64,000 nucleotides of DNA from Macrostomum lignano (GCA_002269645.1 NIVC01002892.1:62001-126000); one strand, 5' to 3'. Shown: positions 23,359 to 52,431, counted from the first letter of the stretch. The notes: a model not told the origin generated them from the sequence alone. Program-made: numbers and translations.

Positions 23359-23489
23359 CTTGTGTGCCGCCTGTCTGTTTCTGTGCCGCCTGTCTGCTTC
23401 TGTGCCGCCTGTCTGCTTCTGTGCCGCCTGTCTGCTTCTGTGCCGCCTGTCTGCTTCTGTGCCGCTTCTTCTTCTTCTGCTTCTTGTGT

Positions 23490-24546: not shown

Positions 24547-25164
24547 CTTGGCTTCCTCAGAGATTCGTCATTAGCTGAACTGAGACAACCCTTGGCGCCA
24601 TTGTGGCAACCAAGTCGAATTTACCAACCTGTTCTTACTCCTTACTCACCTTAGTAACAATTTCTAATAATTTGAAAAATCATTAACATTTCTAAAATTC
24701 AACAGCTCAAGCGTAAGATCTTGAAACTTCAAGAATTAATTTTAATAAGTTAGGCGACTAATAAGTTTGCTCTGACCATTGTTGACAATAGATTGATTGT
24801 AATGATGGCAATCGGAACCACTTAACGAGGCAAGAGCTGGATTGATTAAAGAAAGCGATTGAGCCAATCCATGCTGGAACAATAGTTAAGTATGGCCTAT
24901 ATTATACACGTATAGCTAAGATATGTCATTATAGGGTATTGGCATACACCATGTAATTCCATGACACTGTTCAAACACCACTAAAGTATTGCGTAATAAC
25001 TCCTTATTATTAACTGGGTGGGGGGCGCCCAACGTTAGCCTGTCTTGCTGACAGGCGGTTCCTGAAAACTCGGCAGTCACCTCACTGCACACTGTAGTTC
25101 ACCTAAGCAATGTTTTGTCAAGTATATTGTAGAATCTGGCTGGCTTTAAATAAGACTAGGTACT

Positions 25165-26173: not shown

Positions 26174-26563
26174 ACCGAAATTTTCCTGCCTACCCTTCCC
26201 ACTTTTTACAGCATAGAAAAAATATTGCCTAGACTAAAACTGGCTTTCGTGCACAAATAATGCCACTTATGTCAGTAGAGAGATTTAGCATGCACGGAAA
26301 TAGTTTGAATACAAAAACCACTAAATCATAAAAAACTAGCTTAAGAATCTGTAAAAAAATTTATGAAAATCGTTTGTGTATTACGAGCCAGTGAAACATT
26401 TAACTTAAAGTTGAATTAGTCACATTAATTGTTCGGAGATTGTTAAAAACTGCCTTTAAAATCTTCAATGCTTTTTTTAATAATTGCTTTACGAAAACGA
26501 AGGTTTCATTCAGGCTGTAGAAAATATTTCTATATAATCTAAGCTATCCCTTCTACAATCCCC

Positions 26564-26679
26564 AGCTCTGGTTTCTCTTCATTCCACGATTAAATCTTTC
26601 GCCTTTTACTAAAGATTTCCGTGGAGGGATACTTTTAGGAGAATTCTCTAGTTTTTGCAGGCCTTTCCTAGAAAGGCTT
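26564..26679 (+). ncRNA. U5: U5 spliceosomal snRNA gene, full length
   Basis: 5' CTCTGGTTTCTCTTC; stem AAATCTTT/AAAGATTT enclosing the invariant loop 1 CGCCTTTTACT (26600-26610); CCGTGGAG; Sm-like site AGTTTTTG (26650-26657); 3' hairpin GCCTTTC-CTA-GAAAGGC. Colinear with metazoan U5 as I know it; the ends are approximate. Confidence 0.92.
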
Positions 26680-26705
26680 ATTGGAAGTTGAATAGTTTAG
26701 ACTAG
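26611..26705 (+). repeat. 95-bp direct repeat DR1 = U5 3' half plus ~26 nt of downstream flank
   Basis: AAAGATTTCC...TTTAGACTAG, repeated at 33068-33161, 39519-39613, 45996-46090 and 52337-52431. Confidence 0.95.
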
Positions 26706-26897
26706 CCTAGCTTAGCTCTTGAAAGTACTTTAGTTAGCCTTCCATTCCACTGTACATTTGTTTTTATCTCTACCCCACCCCTAGTCTTATCTTGCAGTCG
26801 CCCCACCCCTCTCAGCGAGCGCACTTTGTGTGCCTCCTGACTCATTAGTTAGTTGTAGTTTAGGTTTAGTTTGAGTGTACCCAAATAATCACGCCAT

Positions 26898-29602
26898 ATG
26901 GCTGCAAATCGCGCCAGCGCTAAAAAGATGGACTGCCGGCCCTCTCTCGAGCACCGGTATCGTCCGAACGAAGCCTACGGTCGCCAGCTTCTTGGACTGA
27001 CGCCGACAGCTGAGCCATCGACTGCGAGCCCGCCGCCAGCAGGCCTGATGCGAGCTCGACGCAGTCTGGAAGGCCGCCACTCGATCAGCCCACCGGCCGG
27101 CGAGCTCTTGCGCAACGCAGAGGAGATCCTGCGAGAGAATGAGCAGCTGCCGGAGGCTGCAGGCGCAGAGGCAGAGCAGCGCATGTCTCTCGACTGCGAC
27201 GAGCCAGGCCAGACAAGCGCCCTGCCATCCAACGAGGCCGCAGCAACCACCGAGCCACCAACTGCCGAGTCCAGCGAGCTCAGTGCGGCAGCGGCAGCGC
27301 CGACGTCTGAGGAGCGCCAGCAATCGGCTGCAGACCAGGCCTCGACGCTGCCAAAGCCCCCTGCCGAGCAACTGGACGCTGACATCAGTCAAATCATCTT
27401 CCCTGATGAGCCTGACTTGACTGACTGTCAGCAGACGATCTACGCCAGCGACAGCACCATCATCTATGCGCCCAAGTTCCTGAGCGAGGTCGCGGACCAA
27501 GTCTACGAGCGCCTGATCACCGACCTGCTGCCTCAAGCCTTTCAGCATCGTCCGAGTGAGCAGCGCCGCGTCTACTGGATCGGCCCGTCGTACACCTACA
27601 GCGGGGTTGAGCTGAAGGAAAATCTAGACTGGCATCAGGTAATTGAAGACATTCGTGACTTCATTTACCATGATACCCAGTTCGATGTCCCGAAGTTCAA
27701 CTCCGTGTTGGTGAACTTCTACACCGAGCCGGGAGACCGGATTCCCTGGCACTCGGACGATGAGGATGAGCTCGGCGACAGGCCGACGATCGCGACCGTG
27801 TCCTTCGGCGCTGAGCGGCTGTTCATGCTGCGCCGTCGGGACGGCAACGTGACGCACCGCTTTCCAACGCTGCCAGGCTCGCTGATTCTGATGGCAGGAA
27901 ACTGCCAGAAACGCCTGCAGCACCAGGTGCCCGCCGCCCACTCTCAGAATGGCGTCCGCATCTCGCTAACATTCCGTGTCACCAAGCCGGAGCTGCGGCG
28001 CAAGCGGCTCTGCCGGATGACCCGACCTACAGCCAGCCGCTAAACGGCGGCCCATTCGGCGACGACCAAGGCGGTCGGGACGACGACCAAGGCGGCCACG
28101 ACGACGACCAGGGCGGCCGGGGCGACGACAGGCCCCAGGAGCGGCAGGCGACGGCGACGCGAGACCGCGAAGGCGATCGGGGTCGGCGCGGCCGTGGCGG
28201 CCACCAGCGAGGCAGGCGAGGAGGTCGCGGCGCGGCGTCCGGTGCGGCGGCGGCTTCGGCGGCTTCCTGGCCGGCCGGTGCGGCGGCGGCTTCGGCGACA
28301 AGCGCGCAGGCGGCTGCGGCAGCGCGGCCCTACGCGCAGGTTGCGGCGCGCCCTGCGCCGCCCAGAAGGCCCCAGGCTGCCATCCCGCCGATCGTTTTTG
28401 AGGTGCACCGGGACGCGGCCAACAAGCTGATGCAGTTCGTTGCCTGGCTGCAGACCAACTTTGCCGGCGAAGCTAGAGCCGTCAACACTGCGCCGATGGC
28501 GAATCAGCCGGCCTATCTCGTGTTCCCAGCGTCGGAGCGGGACTACAACGTCTTCCTGGGCGGCGCGCTGCGCGAGGAGAAGCTGCTCGAGCATCCCGTA
28601 AAGCGCCGTCCAGCCCGAGCCCGACCGCTGGACAACAGAACAGGGCCCGACAGAGTGCAGCAGCAGCCGGTACGCACCTTCGTCGCTACTGAGGTGCCCC
28701 TCGCATTCTCGGAGGCTGACTTCGCGACCCTGTTGCGCGGCACGCTCAAGCTGGACATTGTCAGCGTCCACAGAATCCGAGCCAGAGCGACTGGGAAGGC
28801 AACCCAGTTCGTGCGCATCTTCACAAAGTCGGCGATGACCTACGAGAAGTGCCTCCGCGATGGCATCTGCACCGACTTCTTGAAGTTCAACTGCGAGGAC
28901 AGCCGCACAGACGAGCCGGTCCGCGCTCTGCAATGCCAGCGCTGCCAGGAGTTCGGCCACCGCGCTGCTCAGTGTCGGGGGCAGCAGCGCTGCCGGATTT
29001 GCGGCGGCCAGCATTCCTGGAAGGAGTGCCAGCACGAGGGCCCAGCGGTCTGCGCCAACTGCGGCGGCTCGCACCGAACCACCAGTCGAGCCTGCACCGT
29101 CGCCAAGGCGGAGCACGACAAGGCGACCAGAGCGGCTGCTGAGGCCAAAGCCGCGGCGCGAGCTGCGGAAGCTGCGGCCGCTGCTGCCCCAGTGTCAAGT
29201 GAGACCGACGACGCCGCCGCCGACGACGACTCCGACAGCGGCTGGCTGATCCGCCGAGGCAGGCGCACGGTGCCGGTACCCGCCGCGATCCGGCCGCTTG
29301 TCATCGTGACCGATGATGCCAGGAGCGCTCCGGCGGCAGAGACCGAGTCTGATGTCAATGCGACTGCTCCGTCAGCTGATGCCGGCCAGGCGGTGCAGCT
29401 GCAGCTTAGTGACTTTATGTCGGTGGTGAGCATGCTGTTGCCCCTGATCACCCGCTCTCTGACTCAAGTGGTTGTGCAGGCCCTGTCCCGACCGCCTGGG
29501 GAGGTCCTCACTGTGGAATCAACCAGTAAAATGGTTGAGGACATTGTGCGGGCTGCACTCCAGGAAGTGCCGGGCATGGCTGGCATGACCACTGAGTCCT
29601 AG
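26898..29602 (+). CDS. ORF1 copy 1: AlkB (ALKBH2/3-like 2OG-Fe(II) dioxygenase) fused to a gag-like RRM/triple zinc-knuckle protein; 1-nt frameshift at ~28006
   Basis: AlkB at ~27459-27980: YTYSG, FNSVLVNFY, WHSD (H at 27750), QHQVP, RISLTFR. Knuckles CQRCQEFGHRAAQC, CRICGGQHSWKEC, CANCGGSHRTTSRAC. Copies 2-4 have CAAGCGAGCTC where this copy has CAAGCGGCTC. Confidence 0.9.
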
Positions 29603-29688
29603 TCTCAGGCAGCTAAACTCAAGACTTGAATTGAAACTTCAGTGCGTTAACTGTAGACTCAAACAATCAAACCACAGCCCTGAAGATT

Positions 29689-32469
29689 ATGCATTTAAAC
29701 TGCAGGGGATTCAACCCGAAAATCAGAGAGCTGACACAGTGGGTCGTCAGTCAGGAGCTAGACATTGCCCTCTTTTCTGAGACCATTCTCAAAAGTTGTC
29801 ACACTGTCCAGATTCCCGGGTACTCCATCATTCGGTATGATACCCCGCAAGTCAAACGCGGGCTTCTCCTTGCCCACTCTCCTCGCGTCAAACTCACAAA
29901 TGTGCGCTTGCAGTATGACAATGTCAACCATGAAGCCATCTCTTGCACCGTGAGCTTGTCTGACAACTCTGGTCCTGACTTCAATCTCGCTCTGGTGTAC
30001 AGGTCTCCAGCACCGTACCATCTGAACCTGAACCTACTCAAAAATCTTCTCTCTCGTAGGCGCAGTGTGCTCATGGGTGACCTCAATGCCAGACACCGCT
30101 TCCTCGGGGGTGACAGCAGCAACAACATGGCTGGCTACCAGCTGCACGACTGGCTGTCTGAGGGCCCCACCTCGCCCACCATTCTCAATCAAGCCGGTCA
30201 GTTCACCAGACTGGCCACCAAAAACGGGCTGATTTCTAGGAATGTCTTGGACCTCGCCCTGGCCACTGAGGACTTTCTCCCATTTGTGCAGAACTTTGAG
30301 GTGGGTCCTGACCTGGGCAGTGACCACTTACCTATAATCCTCACGCTCAATATTCAGTCGAAGAAATGGGCTGGTCCCCCCAGACCCAAAAACTTCTCAA
30401 AAACAAACTGGGACGAGTTCAGACTCAAAATCAGTGAAGCTTTGAGCTCAGATCAGAATATTAAATTATCAAATGCTGACCAAATCAATGCCGAAGTGGA
30501 TCACATCACAAAGGCCATTCACACCGTGATTGACTCCACAGTACCAGACTGTGGTGCCAAAAACGCCCTACCCAAGTACATCCTCGACCTGATCAAAGAG
30601 CGCAGACGACTCAGACGCCTCTTCTTCAGCACACGGGATCAAAATTTCAAAACCCAAGCAAACCAGCTCGCAAATCGCATAAAGAGAGAAATTAACTCCT
30701 TCCAGAATGGAAAGCTCACCAAAGTCTGTGAGAGTATTGTTGAAAACAGCAAGAACAAGAAAGTGAAGAATTTCTGGCATGACACTAAAAAGCTGATGGG
30801 CAAATTTAAGCCAACCTCGATCCCCAGCCTCACCCTGGGTCAAACAACTGCGCACACAGATCTGGAGAAGGCTAACCTTCTAGCCGAGACTCTGGACTCA
30901 AAGATGCGCCCAGTCCCTTCCACATGCGAACAGCTCAAACGTGAGGTGGCCGATGTGGCACAGCTCACCTCATTCTACCCCGTTCCTGAGGGAATCGAAC
31001 CCATCGAGACCCACCCACTTGATGCTGCATTCTCTGTGGCAGACACAGTGTGGGAACTGGAGCACCTCAGGCCTGATGGAGCACCCGGGCTGGACAAGAT
31101 TCCCAACTGCGTCCTCAAGCTGGGCTTAGAGGGGGTGGCAATCACGAGACTCACTAACCTCTTCAACGCCTGCTACGGTCGAGGGATTTTCCCCAGCGCC
31201 TGGAAGAAAGCTGTGGTGACAATGATCCCCAAGCCGGACAAACCGCCCGAACACCCCAACTCCTACAGACCAATCAGCCTGACCTCATGTCTGGGCAAAG
31301 TGTTTGAGAAGCTTATAGCAAAAAGACTCACCAAGCACCTTGAGGATAATAAGACCCTAGGAGATGACCAATGCGCCTACCGCAAAATTCACTCCACGTA
31401 TGACAACCTGTGCCGTCTGGCACAAGATGTCATGGTAGCAAAGTGCAAAGCTAAAAAGTCCGCTGCAGTCTTCCTGGATGCAGAGGCAGCTTTTGACTCC
31501 ACCTGGCACGACAAGATCAGGCATAGCATGCTCACCGATGGTTTTCCACCTATGCTCATGCGAATCCTGTCTGACTACCTGCGAGACAGACAGATCCAGG
31601 TTCGAATCGAGGGGGCCCTAAGCGATCCCCACACCATCCAGGCTGGCGTCCCTCAGGGAGGCATTCTGAGCCCTCTCCTGTACCTCCTCTTCGTCAGCTC
31701 AATGCCGACTCCCACCATCTCAAGCGTCAAACGCAGTCAATTCGCAGACGACATGGCCGTCTGGGCCTCAGCAGACACCTTTGCGGGGCTCCGAACATCC
31801 CTTCAAAGCTACCTCAGACGAGTCTTTGACTGGTGCGGTAAACAAGGCATTAGACTGAATGCCGGTAAAAGCAAAGCAATCGCTTTCAACTACAAACCCA
31901 CTAGGCGCATGGACTTGCGACCCAAACTGTATCTGGGGGACACTGAGGTTCCGTACTGTCAGGAGGTGAAATTCCTGGGTGTCCTCCTTGACCAGAGCCT
32001 CTGCCTGAACAAACATGTGGACAACATGGCAGATACCAGCAGAGCCATTGTAATGTCACTGTGCAGAATTGCAAAAATGACAAAGCTGAGTAGCACCACC
32101 CTCAGAATGCTGTACAGGGCATACGGAGAAAGCGCTCTCACCTACGGAGCGCCAATCCTGAGCCAAATCTGTGCGACTAACCAAATCAAATTGCAGAAAA
32201 TTCAAAACCTGGCTCTCCGTATCTGCTATGGTGTGCCATCCTACATCAGCATTGAATACCTGCACAAGCTGGCAGGTATGCCGATGCTCGCAGACAGGGT
32301 CAAGCAGCTGGGGGTGGCTTGGCTGCTCAAGATGAGGGCAGCCAAGCTCCACAGCTTCCACATTGAGCCGGAAGCCCCTCGGGCTCCGGGCCGAACCCCT
32401 GTCCTCAATGTCCTCTGGGATGCCATGAGGCGTCGGGAAAGAAACAGGGGATTCCCACCCCAGGGTTAG
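29689..32469 (+). CDS. ORF2 copy 1: APE endonuclease plus reverse transcriptase, intact, 926 aa, no RNase H
   Basis: APE: HLNCRG, FSET, GDLNARH, SDHLPI. RT: PGLDKIP, YRPISLTS, FLDAEAAFD, GVPQGGILSPLLY, FADD. Confidence 0.96.
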   Translation: MHLNCRGFNPKIRELTQWVVSQELDIALFSETILKSCHTVQIPGYSIIRYDTPQVKRGLLLAHSPRVKLTNVRLQYDNVNHEAISCTVSLSDNSGPDFNLALVYRSPAPYHLNLNLLKNLLSRRRSVLMGDLNARHRFLGGDSSNNMAGYQLHDWLSEGPTSPTILNQAGQFTRLATKNGLISRNVLDLALATEDFLPFVQNFEVGPDLGSDHLPIILTLNIQSKKWAGPPRPKNFSKTNWDEFRLKISEALSSDQNIKLSNADQINAEVDHITKAIHTVIDSTVPDCGAKNALPKYILDLIKERRRLRRLFFSTRDQNFKTQANQLANRIKREINSFQNGKLTKVCESIVENSKNKKVKNFWHDTKKLMGKFKPTSIPSLTLGQTTAHTDLEKANLLAETLDSKMRPVPSTCEQLKREVADVAQLTSFYPVPEGIEPIETHPLDAAFSVADTVWELEHLRPDGAPGLDKIPNCVLKLGLEGVAITRLTNLFNACYGRGIFPSAWKKAVVTMIPKPDKPPEHPNSYRPISLTSCLGKVFEKLIAKRLTKHLEDNKTLGDDQCAYRKIHSTYDNLCRLAQDVMVAKCKAKKSAAVFLDAEAAFDSTWHDKIRHSMLTDGFPPMLMRILSDYLRDRQIQVRIEGALSDPHTIQAGVPQGGILSPLLYLLFVSSMPTPTISSVKRSQFADDMAVWASADTFAGLRTSLQSYLRRVFDWCGKQGIRLNAGKSKAIAFNYKPTRRMDLRPKLYLGDTEVPYCQEVKFLGVLLDQSLCLNKHVDNMADTSRAIVMSLCRIAKMTKLSSTTLRMLYRAYGESALTYGAPILSQICATNQIKLQKIQNLALRICYGVPSYISIEYLHKLAGMPMLADRVKQLGVAWLLKMRAAKLHSFHIEPEAPRAPGRTPVLNVLWDAMRRRERNRGFPPQG

Positions 32470-33067
32470 GCTGGCTACCAGCCTTCCAAACCGGAAGTGA
32501 CCACGCTCTGAAACGCAACTAATAAAACTAAACTTGCTGCCTGAGACAGAGATCGGTTGATCAGTCATTAGGACTGATTAGGTAATCTCTATGTCTCCTC
32601 GCGTTTCTTTTTACAATTTTCCCAACTGTGTTTTTTACCCAACTGCTCTACAAATATCACTAATTGCTTTTTTACACCTTTACTATATTCATTCTATTTT
32701 TACAACTAAATTCAAATATGCGCTATTGCATTTTAATCTCTTTTTTTTACTTAAATGTCTTGCTTTTATTCTCAATAGGCCTTCAAATATCTAGCACGTA
32801 TTTTTTAGATGTCCTGTTTTTATTAGATCCCTTCTTTGTGCGGGATTTCCCTCCCCTCTTTTTTATCCCCAAATGCGTGCAAAATACTGCAAAATATTGA
32901 AAAATAGTTTTATATATGTATATTTTTAATTTCAATATTCGTATTAAATATTCAAATCGAAATCTTGTAAATATTTTTAATTCTTTCGATCAAATACAAA
33001 ATATAACTGCGGCAGAGTTCTTCGGAACTGACCCGCGCCGGTTTCGACGGCACCTCGTTTTAACAAC

Positions 33068-33161
33068 AAAGATTTCCGTGGAGGGATACTCTTAGGAGAA
33101 TTCTCTAGTTTTTGCAGGCCTTTCCTAGAAAGGCTTATTGAAGTTGAATAGTTTAGACTAG
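33068..33161 (+). repeat. DR2: orphan U5 3' half (94 bp) between copies 1 and 2
   Basis: Matches DR1 apart from one substitution and a 1-nt deletion at a site polymorphic among DRs. Confidence 0.93.
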
Positions 33162-33350
33162 CCTAGCTTAGCTCTTAAAGTACTTTAGTTAGCCTTCCAT
33201 TCCACTGTACATTTGTTTTTATCTCTACCCCACCCCTAGTCTTATCTTGCAGTCGCCCCACCCCTCTCAGCGAGCGCACTTTGTGTGCCTCCTGACTCAT
33301 TAGTTAGTTGTAGTTTAGTTTAGTTGAGTGCACCCAAATAATCACGCCAT

Positions 33351-36052
33351 ATGGCTGCAAATCGCGCCAGCGCTAAAAAGATGGACTGCCGGCCCTCTCT
33401 CGAGCACCGGTATCGTCCGAACGAAGCCTACGGTCGCCAGCTTCTTGGACTGACGCCGACAGCTGAGCCATTGACTGCGAGCCCGCCGCCAGCAGGCCAG
33501 ATGCGAGCTCGACGCAGTCTGGAAGGCCGCCACTCGATCAGCCCACCGGCCGGCGAGCTCTTGCGCAACGCAGAGGAGATCCTGCGAGAGAATGAGCAGC
33601 TGCCGGAGGCTGCAGGCGCAGAGGCAGAGCAGCGCATGTCTCTCGACTGCGACGAGCCAGGCCAGACAAGCGCCCTGCCATCCAACGAGGCCGCAGCAAC
33701 CACCGAGCCACCAACTGCCGAGTCCAGCGAGCTCAGTGCGGCAGCGGCAGCGCCGACGTCTGAGGAGCGCCAGCAATCGGCTGCAGACCAGGCCTCGACG
33801 CTGCCAAAGCCCCCTGCCGAGCAACTGGACGCTGACATCAGTCAAATCATCTTCCCTGATGAGCCTGACTTGACTGACTGTCAGCAGACGATCTACGCCA
33901 GCGACAGCACCATCATCTATGCGCCCAAGTTCCTGAGCGAGGTCGCGGACCAAGTCTACGAGCGCCTGATCACCGACCTGCTGCCTCTGCCTTTCAGCAT
34001 CGTCCGAGTGAGCAGCGCCGCGTCTACTGGATCGGCCCGTCGTACACCTACAGCGGGGTTGAGCTGAAGGAAAATCTAACTGGCATCAGGTAATTGAAGA
34101 CATTCGTGACTTCATTTACCATGATACCCAGTTCGATGTCCCGAAGTTCAACTCCGTGTTGGTGAACTTCTACACCGAGCCGGGAGACCGGATTCCCTGG
34201 CACTCGGACGATGAGGATGAGCTCGGCGACAGGCCGACGATCGCGACCGTGTCCTTCGGCGCTGAGCGGCTGTTCATGCTGCGCCGTCGGGACGGCAACG
34301 TGACGCACCGCTTTCCAACGCTGCCAGGCTCGCTGATTCTGATGGCAGGAAACTGCCAGAAACGCCTGCAGCACCAGGTGCCCGCCGCCCACTCTCAGAA
34401 TGGCGTCCGCATCTCGCTAACATTCCGTGTCACCAAGCCGGAGCTGCGGCGCAAGCGAGCTCTGCCGGATGACCCGACCTACAGCCAGCCGCTAAACGGC
34501 GGCCCATTCGGCGACGACCAAGGCGGTCGGGACGACGACCAAGGCGGCCACGACGACGACCAGGGCGGCCGGGGCGACGACAGGCCCCAGGAGCGGCAGG
34601 CGACGGCGACGCGAGACCGCGAAGGCGATCGGGGTCGGCGCGGCCGTGGCGGCCACCAGCGAGGCAGGCGAGGAGGTCGCGGCGCGGCGTCCGGTGCGGC
34701 GGCGGCTTCGGCGGCTTCCTGGCCGGCCGGTGCGGCGGCGGCTTCGGCGACAAGCGCGCAGGCGGCTGCGGCAGCGCGGCCCTACGCGCAGGTTGCGGCG
34801 CGCCCTGCGCCGCCCAGAAGGCCCCAGGCTGCCATCCCGCCGATCGTTTTTGAGGTGCACCGGGACGCGGCCAACAAGCTGATGCAGTTCGTTGCCTGGC
34901 TGCAGACCAACTTTGCCGGCGAAGCTAGAGCCGTCAACACTGCGCCGATGGCGAATCAGCCGGCCTATCTCGTGTTCCCAGCGTCGGAGCGGGACTACAA
35001 CGTCTTCCTGGGCGGCGCGCTGCGCGAGGAGAAGCTGCTCGAGCATCCCGTAAAGCGCCGTCCAGCCCGAGCCCGACCGCTGGACAACAGAACAGGGCCC
35101 GACAGAGTGCAGCAGCAGCCGGTACGCACCTTCGTCGCTACTGAGGTGCCCCTCGCATTCTCGGAGGCTGACTTCGCGACCCTGTTGCGCGCACGCTCAA
35201 GCTGGACATTGTCAGCGTCCACAGAATCCGAGCCAGAGCGACTGGGAAGGCAACCCAGTTCGTGCGCATCTTCACAAAGTCGGCGATGACCTACGAGAAG
35301 TGCCTCCGCGATGGCATCTGCACCGACTTCTTGAAGTTCAACTGCGAGGACAGCCGCACAGACGAGCCGGTCCGCGCTCTGCAATGCCAGCGCTGCCAGG
35401 AGTTCGGCCACCGCGCTGCCAGTGTCGGGGGCAGCAGCGCTGCCGGATTTGCGGCGGCCAGCATTCCTGGAAGGAGTGCCAGCACGAGGGCCCAGCGGTC
35501 TGCGCCAACTGCGGCGGCTCGCACCGAACCACCAGTCGAGCCTGCACCGTCGCCAAGGCGGAGCACGACAAGGCGACCAGAGCGGCTGCTGAGGCCAAAG
35601 CCGCGGCGCGAGCTGCGGAAGCTGCGGCCGCTGCTGCCCCAGTGTCAAGTGAGACCGACGACGCCGCCGCCGACGACGACTCCGACAGCGGCTGGCTGAT
35701 CCGCCGAGGCAGGCGCACGGTGCCGGTACCCGCCGCGATCCGGCCGCTTGTCATCGTGACCGATGATGCCAGGAGCGCTCCGGCGGCAGAGACCGAGTCT
35801 GATGTCAATGCGACTGCTCCGTCAGCTGATGCCGGCCAGGCGGTGCAGCTGCAGCTTAGTGACTTTATGTCGGTGGTGAGCATGCTGTTGCCCCTGATCA
35901 CCCGCTCTCTGACTCAAGTGGTTGTGCAGGCCCTGTCCCGACCGCCTGGGGAGGTCCTCACTGTGGAATCAACCAGTAAAATGGTTGAGGACATTGTGCG
36001 GGCTGCACTCCAGGAAGTGCCGGGCATGGCTGGCATGACCACTGAGTCCTAG
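33351..36052 (+). pseudogene. ORF1 copy 2 (AlkB-gag) with 1-nt deletions at ~33989, ~34078, ~35191 and ~35420
   Basis: Same motifs as copy 1, split over several ORF pieces; the shifts may be assembly errors. Confidence 0.85.
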
Positions 36053-36138
36053 TCTCAGGCAGCTAAACTCAAGACTTGAATTGAAACTTCAGTGCGTTAA
36101 CTGTAGACTCAAACAATCAAACCACAGCCCTGAAGATT

Positions 36139-38918: not shown

Positions 38919-39518
38919 GCTGGCTACCAGCCTTCCAAACCGGAAGTGACCACGCTCTGAAACGCAACTAATAAAACTAAACTTGCTGCCTGAGACAGAG
39001 ATCGGTTGATCAGTCATTAGGACTGATTAGGTAATCTCTATGTCTCCTCGCGTTTCTTTTTACAATTTTCCCAACTGTGTTTTTTACCCAACTGCTCTAC
39101 AAATATCACTAATTGCTTTTTTACACCTTTACTATATTCATTCTATTTTTACAACTAAATTCAAATATGCGCTATTGCATTTTTAATCTCTATTTTTTTA
39201 CTTAAATGTCTTGCTTTTACTCTCAATAGGCCTTCAAATATCTAGCACGTATTTTTTAGATGTCCTGTTTTTATTAGATCCCTTCTTTGTGCGGGATTTC
39301 CCTCCCCTCTTTTTTATCCCCAAATGCGTGCAAAATACTGCAAAATATTGAAAAATAGTTTTATATATGTATATTTTTAATTTCAATATTCGTATTAAAT
39401 ATTCAAATCGAAATCTTGTAAATATTTTTAATTCTTTCGATCAAATACAAAATATAACTGCGGCAGAGTTCTTCGGAACTGACCCGCGCCGGTTTCGACG
39501 GCACCTCGTTTTAACAAC

Positions 39519-39613
39519 AAAGATTTCCGTGGAGGGATACTCTTAGGAGAATTCTCTAGTTTTTGCAGGCCTTTCCTAGAAAGGCTTATTAGAAGTTGAA
39601 TAGTTTAGACTAG
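39519..39613 (+). repeat. DR3: orphan U5 3' half (95 bp)
   Basis: Direct match to DR1 and DR5. Confidence 0.93.
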
Positions 39614-39804
39614 CCTAGCTTAGCTCTTAAAGTACTTTAGTTAGCCTTCCATTCCACTGTACATTTGTTTTTATCTCTACCCCACCCCTAGTCTTATCTT
39701 GCAGTCGCCCCACCCCTCTCAGCGAGCGCACTTTGTGTGCCTCCTGACTCATTAGTAGTTGTCTAGTTTAGTTTAGTGTGAGTGCACCCAAATAATCACG
39801 CCAT

Positions 39805-42527: not shown

Positions 42528-42613
42528 TCTCAGGCAGCTAAACTCAAGACTTGAATTGAAACTTCAGTGCGTTAACTGTAGACTCAAACAATCAAACCAC
42601 AGCCCTGAAGATT

Positions 42614-45393
42614 ATGCATTTAAACTGCAGGGGATTCAACCCGAAAATCAGAGAGCTGACACAGTGGGTCGTCAGTCAGGAGCTAGACATTGCCCTCTTC
42701 TCTGAGACCATTCTCAAAAGTTGTCACACTGTCCAGATTCCCGGGTACTCCATCATTCGGTATGATACCCCGCAAGTCAAACGCGGGCTTCTCCTTGCCC
42801 ACTCTCCTCGCGTCAAACTCACAAATGTGCGCTTGCAGTATGACAATGTCAACCATGAAGCCATCTCTTGCACCGTGAGCTTGTCTGACAACTCTGGTCC
42901 TGACTTCAATCTCGCTCTGGTGTACAGGTCTCCAGCACCGTACCATCTGAACCTGAACCTACTCAAAAATCTTCTCTCCGTAGGCGCAGTGTGCTCATGG
43001 GTGACCTCAATGCCAGACACCGCTTCCTCGGGGGTGACAGCAGCAACAACATGGCTGGCTACCAGCTGCACGACTGGCTGTCTGAGGGCCCCACCTCGCC
43101 CACCATTCTCAATCAAGCCGGTCAGTTCACCAGACTGGCCACCAAAAACGGGCTGATTTCTAGGAATGTCTTGGACCTCGCCCTGGCCACTGAGGACTTT
43201 CTCCCATTTGTGCAGGACTTTGAGGTGGGTCCTGACCTGGGCAGTGACCACTTACCTATAATCCTCACGCTCAATATTCAGTCGAAGAAATGGGCTGGTC
43301 CCCCCAGACCCAAAAACTTCTCAAAAACAAACTGGGACGAGTTCAGACTCAAAATCAGTGAAGCTTTGAGCTCAGATCAGAATATTAAATTATCAAATGC
43401 TGACCAAATCAATGCCGAAGTGGATCACATCACAAAGGCCATTCACACCGTGATTGACTCCACAGTACCAGACTGTGGTGCCAAAAACGCCCTACCCAAG
43501 TACATCCTCGACCTGATCAAAGAGCGCAGACGACTCAGACGCCTCTTCTTCAGCACACGGGATCAAAATTTCAAAACCCAAGCAAACCAGCTCGCAAATC
43601 GCATAAAGAGAGAAATTAACTCCTTCCAGAATGGAAAGCTCACCAAAGTCTGTGAGAGTATTGTTGAAAACAGCAAGAACAAGAAAGTGAAGAATTTCTG
43701 GCATGACACTAAAAAGCTGATGGGCAAATTTAAGCCAACCTCGATCCCCAGCCTCACCCTGGGTCAAACAACTGCGCACACAGATCTGGAGAAGGCTAAC
43801 CTTCTAGCCGAGACTCTGGACTCAAAGATGCGCCCAGTCCCTTCCACATGCGAACAGCTCAAACGTGAGGTGGCCGATGTGGCACAGCTCACCTCATTCT
43901 ACCCCGTTCCTGAGGGAATCGAACCCATCGAGACCCACCCACTTGATGCTGCATTCTCTGTGGCAGACACAGTGTGGGAACTGGAGCACCTCAGGCCTGA
44001 TGGAGCACCCGGGCTGGACAAGATTCCCAACTGCGTCCTCAAGCTGGGCTTAGAGGGGGTGGCAATCACGAGACTCACTAACCTCTTCAACGCCTGCTAC
44101 GGTCGAGGGATTTTCCCCAGCGCCTGGAAGAAAGCTGTGGTGACAATGATCCCCAAGCCGGACAAACCGCCCGAACACCCCAACTCCTACAGACCAATCA
44201 GCCTGACCTCATGTCTGGGCAAAGTGTTTGAGAAGCTTATAGCAAAAAGACTCACCAAGCACCTTGAGGATAATAAGACCCTAGGAGATGACCAATGCGC
44301 CTACCGCAAAATTCACTCCACGTATGACAACCTGTGCCGTCTGGCACAAGATGTCATGGTAGCAAAGTGCAAAGCTAAAAAGTCCGCTGCAGTCTTCCTG
44401 GATGCAGAGGCAGCTTTTGACTCCACCTGGCACGACAAGATCAGGCATAGCATGCTCACCGATGGTTTTCCACCTATGCTCATGCGAATCCTGTCTGACT
44501 ACCTGCGAGACAGACAGATCCAGGTTCGAATCGAGGGGGCCCTAAGCGATCCCCACACCATCCAGGCTGGCGTCCCTCAGGGAGGCATTCTGAGCCCTCT
44601 CCTGTACCTCCTCTTCGTCAGCTCAATGCCGACTCCCACCATCTCAAGCGTCAAACGCAGTCAATTCGCAGACGACATGGCCGTCTGGGCCTCAGCAGAC
44701 ACCTTTGCGGGGCTCCGAACATCCCTTCAAAGCTACCTCAGACGAGTCTTTGACTGGTGCGGTAAACAAGGCATTAGACTGAATGCCGGTAAAAGCAAAG
44801 CAATCGCTTTCAACTACAAACCCACTAGGCGCATGGACTTGCGACCCAAACTGTATCTGGGGGACACTGAGGTTCCGTACTGTCAGGAGGTGAAATTCCT
44901 GGGTGTCCTCCTTGACCAGAGCCTCTGCCTGAACAAACATGTGGACAACATGGCAGATACCAGCAGAGCCATTGTAATGTCACTGTGCAGAATTGCAAAA
45001 ATGACTAAGCTGAGTAGCACCACCCTCAGAATGCTGTACAGGGCATACGGAGAAAGCGCTCTCACCTACGGAGCGCCAATCCTGAGCCAAATCTGTGCGA
45101 CTAACCAAATCAAATTGCAGAAAATTCAAAACCTGGCTCTCCGTATCTGCTATGGTGTGCCATCCTACATCAGCATTGAATACCTGCACAAGCTGGCAGG
45201 TATGCCGATGCTCGCAGACAGGGTCAAGCAGCTGGGGGTGGCTTGGCTGCTCAAGATGAGGGCAGCCAAGCTCCACAGCTTCCACATTGAGCCGGAAGCC
45301 CCTCGGGCTCCGGGCCGAACCCCTGTCCTCAATGTCCTCTGGGATGCCATGAGGCGTCGGGAAAGAAACAGGGGATTCCCACCCCAGGGTTAG
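42614..45393 (+). pseudogene. ORF2 copy 3 (APE-RT) with a 1-nt deletion at ~42978
   Basis: ORF pieces 42614-43156 and 42991-45393. Confidence 0.88.
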
Positions 45394-45995
45394 GCTGGCT
45401 ACCAGCCTTCCAAACCGGAAGTGACCACGCTCTGAAACGCAACTAATAAAACTAAACTTGCTGCCTGAGACAGAGATCGGTTGATCAGTCATTAGGACTG
45501 ATTAGGTAATCTCTATGTCTCCTCGCGTTTCTTTTTACAATTTTCCCAACTGTGTTTTTTACCCAACTGCTCTACAAATATCACTAATTGCTTTTTTACA
45601 CCTTTACTATATTCATTCTATTTTTACAACTAAATTCAAATATGCGCTATTGCATTTTTAATCTCTATTTTTTTTTACTTAAATGTCTTGCTTTTACTCT
45701 CAATAGGCCTTCAAATATCAAGCACGTATTTTTTAGATGTCCTGTTTTTATTAGATCCCTTCTTTGTGTGGGATTTCCCTCCCCTCTTTTTTATCCCCAA
45801 ATGCGTGCAAAATACTGCAAAATATTGAAAAATAGTTTTATATATGTATATTTTTAATTTCAATATTCGTATTAAATATTCAAATCGAAATCTTGTAAAT
45901 ATTTTTAATTCTTTCGATCAAATACAAAATATAACTGCGGCAGAGTTCTTCGGAACTGACCCGCGCCGGTTTCGACGGCACCTCGTTTTAACAAC

Positions 45996-46090
45996 AAAGA
46001 TTTCCGTGGAGGGATACTCTTAAGAGAATTCTCTAGTTTTTGCAGGCCTTTCCTAGAAAGGCTTATTAGAAGTTGAATAGTTTAGACTAG
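45996..46090 (+). repeat. DR4: orphan U5 3' half (95 bp)
   Basis: Direct match, with a G>A variant at 46023. Confidence 0.93.
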
Positions 46091-46173
46091 CCTAGCTTAG
46101 CTCTTAAAAGTACTTTAGTTAGCCTTCCATTCCACTGTACATTTGTTTTTATCTCTACCCCACCCCTAGTCTT

Positions 46174-48864
46174 GGACTGCCGGCCCTCTCTTGAGCACCG
46201 GTATCGTCCGAACGAAGCCTACGGTCGCCAGCTTCTTGGACTGACGCCGACAGCTGAGCCATCGACCGCGAGCCCGCCGCCAGCAGGCCAGATGCGAGCT
46301 CGACGCAGTCTGGAAGGCCGCCACTCGATCAGCCCACCGGCCGGCGAGCTCTTGCGCAACGCAGAGGAGATCCTGCGAGAGAATGAGCAGCTGCCGGAGG
46401 CTGCAGGCGCAGAGGCAGAGCAGCGCATGTCTCTCGACTGCGACGAGCCAAGCCAGACAAGCGCCCTGCCATCCAACGAGGCCGCAGCAACCACCGAGCC
46501 ACCAACTGCCGAGTCCAGCGAGCTCAGTGCGGCAGCGGCAGCGCCGACGTCTGAGGAGCGCCAGCAATCGGCTGCAGACCAGGCCTCGACGCTGCCAAAG
46601 CCCCCTGCCGAGCAACTGGACGCTGACATCAGTCAAATCATCTTCCCTGATGAGCCTGACTTGACTGACTGTCAGCAGACGATCTACGCTAGCGACAGCA
46701 CCATCATCTATGCGCCCAAGTTCCTGAGCGAGGTCGCGGACCAAGTCTACGAGCGCCTGATCACCGACCTGCTGCCTCTGGCCTTTCAGCATCGTCCGAG
46801 TGAGCAGCGCCGTGTCTACTGGATCGGCCCGTCGTACACCCACAGCGGGGTTGAGCTGAAGGAAAATCTAGACTGGCATCAGGTAATTGAAGACATTCGT
46901 GACTTCATTTACCATGATACCCAGTTCGATGTCCCGAAGTTCAACTCCGTGTTGGTGAACTTCTACACCGAGCCGGGAGACCGGATTCCCTGGCACTCGG
47001 ACGATGAGGATGAGCTCGGCGACAGGCCGACGATCGCGACCGTGTCCTTCGGCGCTGAGCGGCTGTTCATGCTGCGCCGTCGGGACGGCAACGTGACGCA
47101 CCGCTTTCCAACGCTGCCAGGCTCGCTGATTCTGATGGCAGGAAACTGCCAGAAACGCCTGCAGCACCAGGTGCCCGCCGCCCACTCTCAGAATGGCGTC
47201 CGCATCTCGCTAACATTCCGTGTCACCAAGCCGGAGCTGCGGCGCAAGCGAGCTCTGCCGGATGACCCGACCTACAGCCAGCCGCTAAACGGCGGCCCAT
47301 TCGGCGACGACCAAGGCGGTCGGGACGACGACCAAGGCGGCCACGACGACGACCAGGGCGGCCGGGGCGACGACAGGCCCCAGGAGCGGCAGGCGACGGC
47401 GACGCGAGACCGCGAAGGCGATCGGGTCGGCGCGGCCGTGGCGGCCACCAGCGAGGCAGGCGAGGAGGTCGCGGCGCGGCGTCCGGTGCGGCGGCGGCTT
47501 CGGCGGCTTCCTGGCCGGCCGGTGCGGCAGCGGCTTCGGCGACAAGCGCGCAGGCGGCTGCGGCAGCGCGGCCCTACGCGCAGGTTGCGGCGCGCCCTGC
47601 GCCGCCCAGAAGGCCCCAGGCTGCCATCCCGCCGATCGTCTTTGAGGTGCACCGGGACGCGGCCAACAAGCTGATGCAGTTCGTTGCCTGGCTGCAGACC
47701 AACTTTGCCGGCGAAGCTCGAGCCGTCAACACTGCGCCGATGGCGAATCAGCCGGCCTATCTCGTGTTCCCAGCGTCGGAGCGGGACTACAACGTCTTCC
47801 TGGGCGGCGCGCTGCGCGAGGAGAAGCTGCTCGAGCATCCCGTAAAGCGCCGTCCAGCCCGAGCCCGACCGCTGGACAACAGAACAGGGCCCGACAGAGT
47901 GCAGCAGCAGCCGGTACGCACCTTCGTCGCTACTGAGGTGCCCCTCGCATTCTCGGAGGCTGACTTCGCGACCCTGTTGCGCGACACGCTCAAGCTGGAC
48001 ATTGTCAGCGTCCACAGAATCCGAGCCAGAGCGACTGGGAAGGCAACCCAGTTCGTGCGCATCTTCACAAAGTCGGCGATGACCTACGAGAAGTGCCTCC
48101 GCGATGGCATCTGCACCGACTTCTTGAAGTTCAACTGCGAGGACAGCCGCACAGACGAGCCGGTCCGCGCTCTGCAATGCCAGCGCTGCCAGGAGTTCGG
48201 CCACCGCGCTGCCCAGTGTCGGGGGCAGCAGCGCTGCCGGATTTGCGGCGGCCAGCATTCCTGGAAGGAGTGCCAGCACGAGGGCCCAGCGGTCTGCGCC
48301 AACTGCGGCGGCTCGCACCGAACCACCAGTCGAGCCTGCACCGTCGCCAAGGCGGAGCACGACAAGGCGACCAGAGCGGCTGCTGAGGCCAAAGCCGCGG
48401 CGCGTGCTGCGGAAGCTGCGGCCACTGCCGCCCCTGAGTCAAGTGAGACCGACGACACCGCCGCCGCCGACGACTCCGACAGCGGCTGGCTGATCCGCCG
48501 AGGCAGGCGCACGGTGCCGGTACCCGCCGCGATCCGGCCGCTTGTCATCGTGACCGATGATGCCAGGAGCGCTCCGGCGGCAGAGACCGAGTCTGCAGCA
48601 GCTGCCAGCGCTGATGTCAATGCGACTGCTCCGTCAGCTGATGCCGGCCAGGCGGTGCAGCTGCAGCTTAGTGACTTTATGTCGGTGGTGAGCATGCTGT
48701 TGCCCCTGATCACCCGCTCTCTGACACAAGTGGTTGTGCAGGCCCTGTCCCGACCGCCTGGGGAGGTCCTCACTGTGGAATCAACCAGTAAAATGGTTGA
48801 GGACATTGTGCGGGCTGCACTCCAGGAAGTGCCGGGCATGGCTGGCATGACCACTGAGTCCTAG
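46174..48864 (+). pseudogene. ORF1 copy 4 (AlkB-gag), start codon deleted, 1-nt homopolymer deletion at ~47425
   Basis: ORF 46172-47674 runs unbroken from the N-terminus through the whole AlkB domain; the gag part is in 47647-48864. Confidence 0.85.
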
Positions 48865-48950
48865 TCTCAGGCAGCTAAACTCAAGACTTGAATTGAAACT
48901 TCAGTGCGTTAACTGTAGACTCAAACAATCAAACCACAGCCCTGAAGATT

Positions 48951-51732
48951 ATGCATTTAAACTGCAGAGGATTCAACCCGAAAATCAGAGAGCTGACACA
49001 GTGGGTCGTCAGTCAGGAGCTAGACATTGCCCTCTTCTCTGAGACCATTCTCAAAAGCTGTCACACTGTCCAGATTCCCGGGTACTCCATCATTCGGTAT
49101 GATACCCCGCATGTAAAACGCGGGCTGCTCCTTGCTCACTCTCCTCGCGTCAAACTCACAAATGTGCGCTTGCAGTATGACAATGTCAACCATGAAGCCA
49201 TCTCCTGCACCGTGAGCTTGTCTGACAACTCTGGTCCTGACTTCAATCTCGCTCTGGTGTACAGGTCTCCAGCACCGTACCACCTGAACCTGAACCTACT
49301 CAAAAATCTTCTCTCCCGTAGGCGCAGTGTGCTCATGGGTGACCTCAATGCTAGACACCGCTTCCTCGGGGGTGACAGCAGCAACAACATGGCTGGCTAC
49401 CAGCTGCACGACTGGCTGTCTGAGGGTCCCACTTCGCCCACCATACTCAATCAGGCCGGTCAGTTCACCAGACTGGCCACCAAAAACGGGCTGATTTCTA
49501 GGAATGTCTTGGACCTCGCCCTGGCCACTGAGGACTTTCTCCCATTTGTGCAGGACTTTGAGGTGGGTCCTGACCTGGGCAGTGACCACTTACCTATAAT
49601 CCTCACGCTCAATATTCAGTCGAAGAAATGGGCTGGTCCCCCCAGACCCAAAAACTTCTCAAAAACAAACTGGGACGAGTTCAGACTCAAAATCAGTGAA
49701 GCTTTGAGCTCAGATCAGAATATTAAATTATCAAATGCTGACCAAATCAATGCCGAAGTGGATCACATCACAAAGGCCATTCACACCGTGATTGACTCCA
49801 CAGTACCAGACTGTGGTGCCAAAAAACGCCCTACCCAAGTACATCCTCGACCTGATCAAAGAGCGCAGACGACTCAGACGCCTCTTCTTCAGCACACGGG
49901 ATCAAAATTTCAAAACCCAAGCAAACCAGCTCGCAAATCGCATAAAGAGAGAAATTAGCGCCTTCCAGAATGGAAAGCTCACCAAAGTCTGTGAGAGCAT
50001 TGTTGAAAATAGCAAGAACAAGAAAGTGAAGAATTTCTGGCACGACACTAAAAAGCTGATGGGCAAATTTAAGCCAACCTCCATCCCCAGCCTCACCCTG
50101 GGTCAAACAACTGCGCACACAGATCTGGAGAAGGCTAACCTTCTAGCCGAAACTCTGGACTCAAAGATGCGCCCAGTCCCTTCCACATGCGAACAGCTCA
50201 AACGTGAGGTGGCCGAGGTGGCACAGCTCACCTCATTCTACCCCGTTCCTGAGGGAATCGAACCCATCGAGACCCACCCACTTGATGCTGCATTCTCTGT
50301 GGCAGACACAGTGTGGGAACTGGAGCACCTCAGGCCTGATGGAGCACCCGGGCTAGACAAGATTCCCAACTGCGTCCTCAAGCTGGGCTTAGAGGGGGTG
50401 GCAATCACGAGACTCACTAACCTCTTCAACGCCTGCTACGGTCGAGGGATTTTCCCCAGCGCCTGGAAGAAAGCTGTGGTGACAATGATCCCCAAGCCGG
50501 ACAAACCGCCCGAACACCCCAACTCCTACAGACCAATCAGCCTGACCTCATGTCTGGGCAAAGTGTTTGAGAAGCTTATAGCAAAAAGACTCACCAAGCA
50601 CCTTGAGGATAATAAGACCCTAGGAGATGACCAATGCGCCTACCGCAAAATTCACTCCACGTATGACAACCTGTGCCGTCTGGCACAAGATGTCATGGTA
50701 GCAAAGTGCAAAGCTAAAAAGTCCGCTGCAGTCTTCCTGGATGCAGAGGCAGCTTTTGACTCCACCTGGCACGACAAGATCAGGCATAGCATGCTCACCG
50801 ATGGTTTTCCACCTATGCTCATGCGAATCCTGTCTGACTACCTGCGAGACAGACAGATCCAGGTTCGAATCGAGGGGGCCCTAAGCGATCCCCACACCAT
50901 CCAGGCTGGCGTCCCTCAGGGAGGCATTCTGAGCCCTCTCCTGTACCTCCTCTTCGTCAGCTCAATGCCGACTCCCACCATCTCAAGCGTCAAACGCAGT
51001 CAATTCGCAGACGACATGGCCGTCTGGGCCTCAGCAGACACCTTTGCGGGGCTCCGAACATCCCTTCAAAGCTACCTCAGACGAGTCTTTGACTGGTGCG
51101 GTAAACAAGGCATTAGACTGAATGCCGGTAAAAGCAAAGCAATCGCTTTCAACTACAAACCCACTAGGCGCATGGACTTGCGACCCAAACTGTATCTGGG
51201 GGACACTGAGGTTCCGTACTGTCAGGAGGTGAAATTCCTGGGTGTCCTCCTTGACCAGAGCCTCTGCCTGAACAAACATGTGGACAACATGGCAGATACC
51301 AGCAGAGCCATTGTAATGTCACTGTGCAGAATTGCAAAAATGACAAAGCTGAGTAGCACCACCCTCAGAATGCTGTACAGGGCATACGGAGAAAGCGCTC
51401 TCACCTACGGAGCGCCAATCCTGAGCCAAATCTGTGCGACTAACCAAATCAAATTGCAGAAAATTCAAAACCTGGCTCTCCGTATCTGCTATGGTGTGCC
51501 ATCCTACATCAGCATTGAATACCTGCACAAGCTGGCAGGTATGCCGATGCTCGCAGACAGGGTCAAGCAGCTGGGGGTGGCTTGGCTGCTCAAGATGAGG
51601 GCAGCCAAGCTCCACAGCTTCCACATTGAGCCGGAAGCCCCTCGGGCTCCGGGCCGAACCCCCGTCCTCAATGTCCTCTGGGATGCCATGAGGCGTCGGG
51701 AAAGAAACAGGGGAATCCCACCCCAGGGTTAG
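48951..51732 (+). pseudogene. ORF2 copy 4 (APE-RT) with a +1 A in a homopolymer at ~49821-49826
   Basis: A6 versus A5 in copy 1; pieces 48951-49958 and 49792-51732. Confidence 0.88.
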
Positions 51733-52336
51733 GCTGGCTACCAGCCTTCCAAACCGGAAGTGACCACGCTCTGAAACGCAACTAATAAAACTAAACTTGC
51801 TGCCTGAGACAGAGATCGGTTGATCAGTCATTAGGACTGATTAGGTAATCTCTATGTCTCCTCGCGTTTCTTTTTACAATTTACCCAACTGTGTTTTTTA
51901 CCCAACTGCTCTACAAATATCACTAATTGCTTTTTTACACCTTTACTATATTCATTCTATTTTTACAACTAAATTCAAATATGCGCTATTGCATTTTTAA
52001 TCTCTATTTTTTTTACTTAAATGTCTTGCTTTTACTCTCAATAGGCCTTCAAATATCTAGCACGTATTTTTTAGATGTCCTGTTTTTATTAGATCCCTTC
52101 TTTGTGCGGGATTCCCCTCCCCTCTTTTTTATCCCCAAATGCGTGCAAAATTCTGCAAAATATTGAAAAATAGTTTTATATATGTATATTTTTAATTTCA
52201 ATATTCGTATTAAATATTCAAATCGAAATCTTGTAAATATTTTTAATTCTTTCGATCAAATACAAAATATAACTGCGGCAGAGTTCTTCGGAACTGACCC
52301 GCGCCGGTTTCGACGGCACCTCGTTTTAACAACAAC

Positions 52337-52431
52337 AAAGATTTCCGTGGAGGGATACTCTTAGGAGAATTCTCTAGTTTTTGCAGGCCTTTCCTAGAAA
52401 GGCTTATTAGAAGTTGAATAGTTTAGACTAG
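52337..52431 (+). repeat. DR5: terminal U5 3' half, followed by unrelated flank (ATTGAAGG...)
   Basis: Similarity to the unit stops abruptly after TTTAGACTAG. Confidence 0.93.

Follow-up and report, generated by a model that had tools for sequence, protein, structure and literature searches.

The window analysed here, a 64,000-nt stretch of contig NIVC01002892.1 from the flatworm Macrostomum lignano (GCA_002269645.1, assembly Mlig_3_7), holds an intact gene for the U5 small nuclear RNA (snRNA) and, running on from its 3′ end, a head-to-tail array of four 6.3–6.5-kb copies of a long interspersed nuclear element (LINE), referred to below as the U5 LINE. An Rfam scan of the window at gathering thresholds returned a single match, U5 snRNA (RF00020), at 26563–26678 on the plus strand, which was full length (model positions 1–117) and scored 83.8 bits, more than twice the gathering score (40). 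An earlier note on this DNA had placed a U5 gene at 26564–26679 and proposed such a scan as a check: the sequence passes the covariance model, and the coordinates needed shifting by one base. Loop 1 of this gene unit (‘U5a’), CGCCTTTTACT, lies at 26600–26610, and the insertion site falls between 26610 and 26611 (U5 nt 48/49). Loop 1 with its 8-bp stem, the Sm site AGUUUUUG and the 3′-terminal hairpin all align with the RF00020 consensus.

The LINE array and its 3′ junctions

The 16-mer that starts at the insertion site, AAAGATTTCCGTGGAG, occurred exactly five times in the window, at 26611, 33068, 39519, 45996 and 52337, against a chance expectation of ~0.05 matches (five were reached in 0/100 shuffles); the loop-1 side of the target (AATCTTTCGCCTTTTACT) occurred once only. 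Each of the downstream 16-mers was preceded directly by a LINE tail, reading ...GGCACCTCGTTTTAACAAC or, in the last case, ...AACAACAAC, and 4/4 junctions took the form ...GTTTTAACAAC joined to AAAGATTTCC, the fourth with one AAC more. Every (AAC)n tail in the window abuts U5 nt 49, the first base past loop 1. As aligned to the Rfam model, CGCCUUUUACU forms loop 1, 11 nt long and carried on an 8-bp stem whose 3′ strand is AAAGAUUU, so that the junction lies exactly at the boundary of loop and stem. The earlier note had described four 3′ junctions between LINE tail and U5, at the first base after loop 1 and at the edge of an 8-bp hairpin; the 16-mer positions, the junction sequences and the alignment bear out both statements. 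Since the target begins AAA and one tail, found elsewhere, ends AAA, the position of the nick itself carries an uncertainty of up to ~3 nt.

Self-BLAST resolved four tandem units, starting at 26611, 33068, 39519 and 45996 and sharing 98.7–99.6% identity, each of which combines 68 bp of U5 (nt 49–116) and 27 bp from the U5 3′ flank with a LINE of ~6.36 kb; the LINE begins CCTAGCTTAGCTC, at 26706 in unit 1, and has (AAC)n as its tail. Read from the left, the window therefore shows the U5 5′ half, the 95-bp segment formed by the 68 and 27 bp, and then four elements, each followed by a further 95-bp segment, before the flank (U5 5′ half–95 bp–E1–95–E2–95–E3–95–E4–95–flank). Full-length copies are thus flanked by a direct target duplication of 95 bp, and one complete U5 gene stays at the left end of the array, upstream of the LINE copies. 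Head-to-tail copies at U5 had been recognised in the earlier note; this duplication had been overlooked.

The boundaries of these features, all on the plus strand, were set by self-BLAST, the 16-mer search, the junctions and the open reading frames (ORFs). The first segment, which is the 3′ half of the intact U5 gene, occupies 26611–26705 and is followed by copy 1 (26706–33067, 6362 bp), a segment one nt short (33068–33161, 94 bp), copy 2 (33162–39518), the segment at 39519–39613, copy 3 (39614–45995), the segment at 45996–46090 and copy 4 (46091–52336). The terminal segment (52337–52431) comprises the native U5 3′ half and its 27 bp, and from 52432 on the flank is unique. The leftmost copy, copy 1, is the best preserved and the sole one in the window with an open ORF2, its ORF1 being split by a private 1-nt deletion; copies 2 and 3 are frameshifted; and copy 4, the rightmost, is the most diverged, with ~0.8% substitutions relative to copies 1–3, a deletion of ~140 bp in its 5′ untranslated region (UTR) and the longer tail AACAACAAC. 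The array shows, in other words, a left-to-right gradient of age.

Element proteins and affinities

In copy 1, the N-terminal part of ORF1 (‘ORF0’, 381 aa; 26898–28043, plus strand) consists of a low-complexity region followed, at ~27558–27998, by an AlkB/ALKBH3-like 2-oxoglutarate- and Fe(II)-dependent (2OG-Fe(II)) dioxygenase domain (Pfam PF13532, E = 8.1e-22; 78.8 bits against a cutoff of 31.2). The best solved relative of this domain was human ALKBH3 (PDB 2iuw, E = 3.6e-23), with ALKBH2 at E = 6e-15, and its HxD...H triad and RxxxxxR motif are intact (WHSDDE, QHQVP and RISLTFR, compared with WHSDDE, QHRVP and RVNLTFR in ALKBH3). The domain is present in window copies 2–4 too, and in copy 3 it is in frame with the ORF1 core. 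The rest of ORF1 (27815–29602, plus strand), its frame open over 27815–29599, comprises a Gly/Asp/Arg-rich linker, the core and, at ~28934–29095, three CCHC knuckles, CQRCQEFGHRAAQC, CRICGGQHSWKEC and CANCGGSHRTTSRAC, recognised by motif check and a weak Pfam zf-CCHC match.

The split between ‘ORF0’ and ORF1 is due to the private deletion in copy 1 (at ~28009, GCG-GCT compared with GCGAGCT in 5/5 other full-length copies), which may reflect either a genuine mutation or an error in the consensus of the long reads. In all five of these other copies the AlkB frame is continuous with the knuckle frame, and in a relative from another sequencing run, L001 (ORF2 56% identical), one ORF carries both the knuckles and an AlkB domain (2–330) that keeps the HxD/H/RxxxxxR residues; in the family consensus, accordingly, ORF1 is one frame of ~901 aa that includes AlkB. 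To judge from these domain matches, ORF1 is an ALKBH3-like AlkB dioxygenase domain fused to a three-knuckle nucleic-acid-binding protein, the knuckles having been seen in the earlier note and the AlkB domain missed. In GenBank two such proteins, PAA61448.1 and PAA49615.1, carry the annotation ‘Fe2OG dioxygenase domain-containing’, the consequence being that ORFs of the U5 LINE are recorded there as proteins of the host.

ORF2 (926 aa from its ATG; 29689–32469, plus strand; Pfam PF03372, PF14529 and PF00078, with motif check) encodes an apurinic/apyrimidinic-type (APE) endonuclease at ~29689–30339 and a reverse transcriptase (RT) at ~31225–31983 with the active site FADD, the catalytic motifs of both being intact in copy 1 (N/E/D-N-H/SDH and FADD). 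The combination of an APE endonuclease with a triple-knuckle ORF1, as the earlier note had it, was thus recovered by Pfam and motif check. Neither an RNase H domain (Pfam and motif check of the copy 1 ORF2) nor a C-terminal Cys motif (no CX2C in the last ~150 residues of the translation) was found. The 3′ UTR (32470–33067, plus strand) ends ...GGCACCTCGTTTTAACAAC, the tail being a short (AAC)n and not poly(A). With an APE domain, a LINE-type RT, no long terminal repeats (LTRs) and such a tail, the U5 LINE is an APE-type non-LTR element. Hairpins predicted in its 3′-terminal RNA were no better than those of shuffles (z = −1.4), and no Rfam family was detected at 26680–26960 even at E ≤ 10, hence no 5′ self-cleaving ribozyme as in R2.

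The triple knuckles of the R1, I, Jockey and LOA ORF1 proteins follow the pattern CX2CX4HX4C, CX2CX3HX4C, CX2CX3HX6C. The ORF1 knuckles of the U5 LINE match this spacing, as do those of two distant relatives, L127 and L128, and the three-knuckle ORF1 places the element, as a putative member, in the I/R1/Jockey/LOA group. L127 and L128 share only the three-knuckle ORF1 with the U5 LINE; AlkB is absent from both, and is for this reason seen as a lineage-specific acquisition. Comparisons of ORF2 were as follows: the nearest database proteins were 27–31% identical and unnamed; only the RT core aligned with human L1 ORF2p (E = 6.6e-18, no better a match than R2 at 2.4e-16); the APE domain was equally weakly similar to the TRAS1 endonuclease and to an L1 endonuclease variant (E = 0.004); and comparisons of ORF2 and of the APE domain with PDB structures did not separate clades. 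An exact-match look-up of the ORF2 protein returned no record.

In Tx1 and Keno elements, ORF2 has a C-terminal Cys-rich (CCHC) motif. Membership of this group (L1 clade) was considered for the U5 LINE and rejected on indirect tests made without a reference phylogeny, namely the L1 match confined to the RT core and the lack of a C-terminal CX2C. Membership of Utopia was also rejected: the U5 LINE has two ORFs and an N-terminal APE domain, and since its endonuclease is of the APE type and not a restriction-like endonuclease (RLE), it is not a Utopia element.

The closest ORF2 relatives, L001–L003, come from other samples (46–59% identity, on contigs of 4–5.5 kb) and have no UTR sequence in common with the window; a profile made from the four ORF2s retrieved no additional close relative. 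When metagenome contigs were scanned for VAAAGATTTCCGTGGAG (the U5 3′ stem without the preceding loop 1), no LINE junction was seen among the matches listed, which came from at least 120 stretches. Chance occurrences, seemingly within coding sequence, made up nearly all of these matches; one match was to a variant of U5 that has an additional A.

Arrays at other U5 genes

Other loci were retrieved via two clusters of AlkB-ORF proteins, the members of which map to the window and to two further contigs only, NIVC01002030.1 (L005; PAA61448.1) and NIVC01003829.1 (L006; PAA49615.1). Both contigs proved to contain arrays of the U5 LINE at U5 genes, such that GenBank's gene models for the AlkB ORF cluster lie on exactly these three array contigs. 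L006 holds a full U5 gene (83.5 bits), an internally deleted LINE, a 95-bp segment and a full LINE. At its right junction (12114/12115) the LINE tail is joined, at the same base as elsewhere, to a different U5-like 3′ half, AAAGATTTCCGTGGAG AGGAACATTCAATGAGTGTTCCCTGATTTGTGAAACCCCTTCCAAGAAGGGG, beyond which the flank is unrelated. L005 begins with U5 nt 1–62, 8 nt of filler and a 5′-truncated LINE (the last ~570 bp, tail AACAACAAA) with a 14-bp duplication of its own; there follow a 95-bp segment, a full LINE, a further segment and a partial LINE ending at an assembly gap. The gap is a run of N from 16548, which interrupts the third LINE of that array. Because the truncated copy lies upstream of a pre-existing ‘segment + full element’, it represents a second hit on an intact gene. 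That it might be a chimera of U5 and LINE made by template switching was considered and rejected, given that its U5 5′ half keeps the upstream flank of the intact L006 gene. The 5′ ends of the U5 LINE are accordingly of two kinds, with a 95-bp duplication in full-length copies and 14 bp plus the 8-nt filler in the truncated copy of L005.

Over the three contigs, 8/8 clear LINE tails precede AAAGATTTCCGTGGAG, at the same U5 base; none was seen elsewhere in these contigs. The same junction nucleotide was used in three U5 contexts and by the separately truncated copy, with tails of one, two or three AAC or of AACAACAAA. The earlier note had argued for U5 targeting from one locus, a proposal now supported by two more contigs; of the tabulation of 3′ flanks that it suggested for all genomic copies, the part that covers three contigs gave a uniform outcome, all eight tails standing at U5 nt 49.

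One alternative explanation is that the arrays are artefacts, with repeats collapsed or mis-joined during assembly. The source is a long-read draft, an assembly gap lies inside the L005 array, and 44 indel events, many of them of 1 nt, separate the six full-length copies, all of which is consistent with an artefact. The same architecture recurs, however, in three contigs that differ in detail, each copy has distinct substitutions, and the junction sequences are clean and reproducible, so that we regard this explanation as extremely improbable.

A second explanation is that the U5 3′ half belongs to the LINE itself, as a captured 5′ ‘head’ or as a product of RT template switching (comparable to U6/L1 chimeras), and came to lie beside a U5 gene by chance. 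The identical 95-bp segment before every full-length copy is consistent with this, as are variants of the 27-mer flank that are common to several loci and not specific to one array, and SINEU elements do carry snRNA-derived heads (PMC4494074). Yet the array begins exactly where the segment completes a full U5 gene with a conserved upstream block, and does so in two gene units; the terminal segment, after the last LINE, runs into unique flank; the truncated copy of L005 has the same 3′ junction without any 5′ head; and the variant U5 half of L006 lies downstream of a LINE tail, not at a LINE 5′ end. A captured head is therefore very unlikely.

The variant half of L006 (12115–12183) has the same first 16 nt as U5a, followed by AGGAACA..., an Sm-like GAUUUGUG and an CCCCUUCCAAGAAGGGG hairpin. 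Its Sm-like AUUUGUG and terminal hairpin align with RF00020, which suggests a second type of U5 gene in M. lignano, of which only the 3′ half is visible, with a covariance-model score that is not significant. About 40 bp past this half, at 12221–12295, L006 has TGTACCTCATTTTAACAATAA abutting TTTCCATGGTGAG..., then CTTCCAAGAAAAGGTACT: possibly a decayed tail and a decayed U5-like 3′ half, the relic of an old and extremely truncated insertion.

The two U5 gene units, U5a in the window and ‘U5b’ in L005 and L006, differ in their first transcribed bases. A block, TTTAYGAAAACGAAKGTTTMATT, is kept ~45–75 bp upstream of both despite otherwise diverged flanks (compared over window 26485–26562, L005 8978–9057 and L006 1043–1122), and may be an snRNA proximal sequence element.

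The alternative that has most to be said for it is a single chance insertion, by a LINE with no specificity, into one U5 gene, multiplied since by unequal crossing-over between the 95-bp duplications and by segmental or whole-genome duplication. Tandem units 98.7–99.6% identical speak for this, and M. lignano is described as a neopolyploid (PMC10733133). The promoter-proximal flanks of U5a and U5b, on the other hand, are alignable in two short blocks only, at ~82%, while their LINEs differ by 0.4–0.6%; two copies of the same L006 array, L6a and L6b, differ by 1.0%, which exceeds the difference of either from copies at other loci; the truncated copy of L005, with its own 14-bp duplication, sits at the same base; and the tail at the right of L006 meets a different U5-like 3′ half with unrelated flank. 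Since tail lengths vary and array mates are not nearest relatives, several independent insertions are indicated, as opposed to one amplified accident.

Several observations weigh in the other direction. Copies 1–3 differ by 4–16 substitutions only and may have arisen by unequal crossing-over or another form of local multiplication. Divergence between the distal upstream flanks of the window and L005 is only 0.9%, which makes the three contigs recent paralogues or homeologues of a single region and the insertions only partly independent; the argument that the LINEs are younger than the duplication of the locus was accordingly rejected for the distal flank, and holds for the promoter-proximal 1.4 kb only. 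Exchange between arrays could mimic some of the patterns described. The variant U5 half of L006, taken as a truncated match, covers model positions 38–117 with only 15.1 bits (E = 8.9). Retrieval by protein is blind to truncated copies at non-U5 sites, and covered three contigs as opposed to the whole genome. Among the copies seen, none is wholly intact. Finally, there is no U5 within 2.4 kb downstream of relative L002, and two of the L001–L003 contigs stop inside the 3′ UTR, all three being too short to serve as a test of U5 targeting. Even with these points taken into account, a single amplified insertion seems improbable, and a site-specific LINE with partly independent insertion events is supported. 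On the sequence evidence as a whole, the U5 LINE is very probably a young APE-type non-LTR retrotransposon of M. lignano, probably still active, that targets the U5 snRNA gene.

Long minisatellite arrays, their units 15–39 bp in length, dominate the window (1–3040, 3412–5038, 11145–13697, 14795–16390, 22130–22922, 23487–24548, 25173–25984 and 53451–59502), and long ‘ORFs’ upstream of the U5 gene lie mostly within such repeats. The last of these arrays, 6 kb of TGGATGGTTGCTGAC, separates the LINE array from an uninterrupted ORF of 1464 aa on the minus strand (59516–63910) with a Helitron_like_N domain (E = 6.5e-30) and a PIF1 helicase domain (E = 4.5e-27), apparently an intact Helitron Rep/Hel gene. 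An Rfam match to MIR8562 at 25899–26119 (L004 9002–9222) was discarded as almost certainly spurious: it scored 58 bits against a gathering score of 211 and lies in and beside a 16-bp satellite.

Proposed insertion mechanism, precedents and significance

The junctions lend themselves to a model of insertion through target-primed reverse transcription (TPRT). Opposite the point where loop 1 meets the 3′ strand of its stem (U5 nt 48/49), the endonuclease would cut the bottom strand, the predicted nick being 5′-...GGAAATCTTT^AGTAAAAGG-3′, and the freed ...AATCTTT-3′ end would prime reverse transcription of a LINE RNA with an (AAC)n tail. The consensus of the L1 endonuclease is given as TTTTT/AA (PMC8565326), and the putative U5 nick site resembles, by analogy, the T-rich/A preference of LINE APE nucleases. 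The AlkB domain would remove methyl lesions or marks from the LINE RNA or cDNA. With both target halves retained nowhere but in the leftmost gene, this gene alone could be hit again; arrays would grow at the left, with the youngest copy leftmost, which fits the good preservation of copy 1 and the divergence of copy 4.

For the 95-bp duplication two models can be offered. The two nicks might be staggered by a true 95 bp, or else RNA read through from the U5 promoter might carry a leader of U5 and 27 bp, its 5′ end being joined by homology. The 14-bp duplication of the truncated copy, which has no leader, favours the leader model, as do the 27-mer variants found at several loci; in favour of staggered nicks is that the window's native right flank has an identical 27-mer. 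As to stagger or leader, the variants seen in the 27-mer and in the U5 3′ half give mixed patterns.

Genes for snRNAs are rare targets: the Utopia paper counts as reported cases only Keno and Utopia, at U2, and Dada-U1 and Dada-U6 (PMC4640811), the latter two being DNA transposons; the earlier note was right about the U2 elements. Its suggestion that the U5 LINE is a U5 specialist of a different lineage stands in so far as the element, which is no Utopia, is by the indirect tests not Tx1-like. A claim to be the first such specialist is weakened, because the legend to Figure 3 of Kojima 2015 includes ‘U5, U5 snRNA’ among known Tx1 targets, in that legend with no names or detail (PMC4494074). 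These unnamed Tx1 families, a precedent for LINEs at U5, share a class of target gene with the U5 LINE, a comparison made at the level of the legend, which gives no insertion position; the Utopia paper of the same year, as far as its list of reported cases goes, omits them. If the Tx1 record holds, U5 targeting would have arisen a second time, independently, in the U5 LINE.

Keno resembles the U5 LINE as an APE-type non-LTR element with a precise 3′ junction in a multicopy spliceosomal snRNA gene (PMC4640811), but its target is U2, whereas the U5 LINE targets U5, has no C-terminal Cys motif and carries an ORF1 with three knuckles and AlkB. Utopia, which is NeSL/R2-like, shares the snRNA target, the precise 3′ junction, the variable 5′ junctions and target-site duplications (TSDs), and on occasion also shows insertions in tandem and arrays that contain U2 fragments (PMC4640811); it differs in having a single ORF with N-terminal zinc fingers and a C-terminal RLE. 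R1 and R2 are comparable in inserting by TPRT into a conserved multicopy RNA gene at a single nucleotide; they differ in that their target is ribosomal DNA and that they have no AlkB, and the 95-bp duplication of the U5 LINE restores its target gene. R1 combines an APE endonuclease and a three-knuckle ORF1 with a 14-bp TSD. For R1 and R2, co-transcription with the target gene and the use of target-derived RNA ends for precise joining have been discussed (PMC4494074).

AlkB-type demethylase domains occur in other mobile RNA-based replicons, namely RNA viruses of plants (PMC544882) and one orchid lineage of Ty3/Gypsy LTR retrotransposons (PMC9289625). The orchid domain, called ALKBH5-like, binds RNA and removes N6-methyladenosine (PMC9289625); the U5 LINE differs in being an animal non-LTR element with AlkB fused to ORF1, closest to ALKBH3 among solved structures. 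No report of an AlkB domain in LINEs or other non-LTR retrotransposons was found in the literature, Repbase and Dfam lying outside this search. It is conceivable, although we lean slightly against so broad a claim, that the U5 LINE is a new LINE lineage in which U5 targeting evolved independently, that each full-length insertion rebuilds the U5 gene, by way of the 95-bp duplication or of a leader read through from the U5 promoter, and that this is the first non-LTR element with a nucleic-acid demethylase. If this is so, rebuilding of U5 would keep the host gene functional and the target reusable, and methylation or alkylation of LINE RNA or cDNA would limit retrotransposition in M. lignano.

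Site-specific LINEs are natural models for safe-harbour gene insertion, as in work on R2, and for parasites living within essential multicopy genes. The U5 LINE would join them as a well-resolved case at U5, belonging to another LINE lineage and living in a model flatworm capable of transgenesis, with an insertion architecture that preserves the target gene and junctions that predict cut sites on both DNA strands. Its interest lies in a second U5-targeting lineage, in target-preserving insertion and, above all, in the fusion of AlkB to ORF1. This fusion is potentially the more general point; it suggests a role in LINE replication for methylated bases of the RNA or cDNA intermediate.

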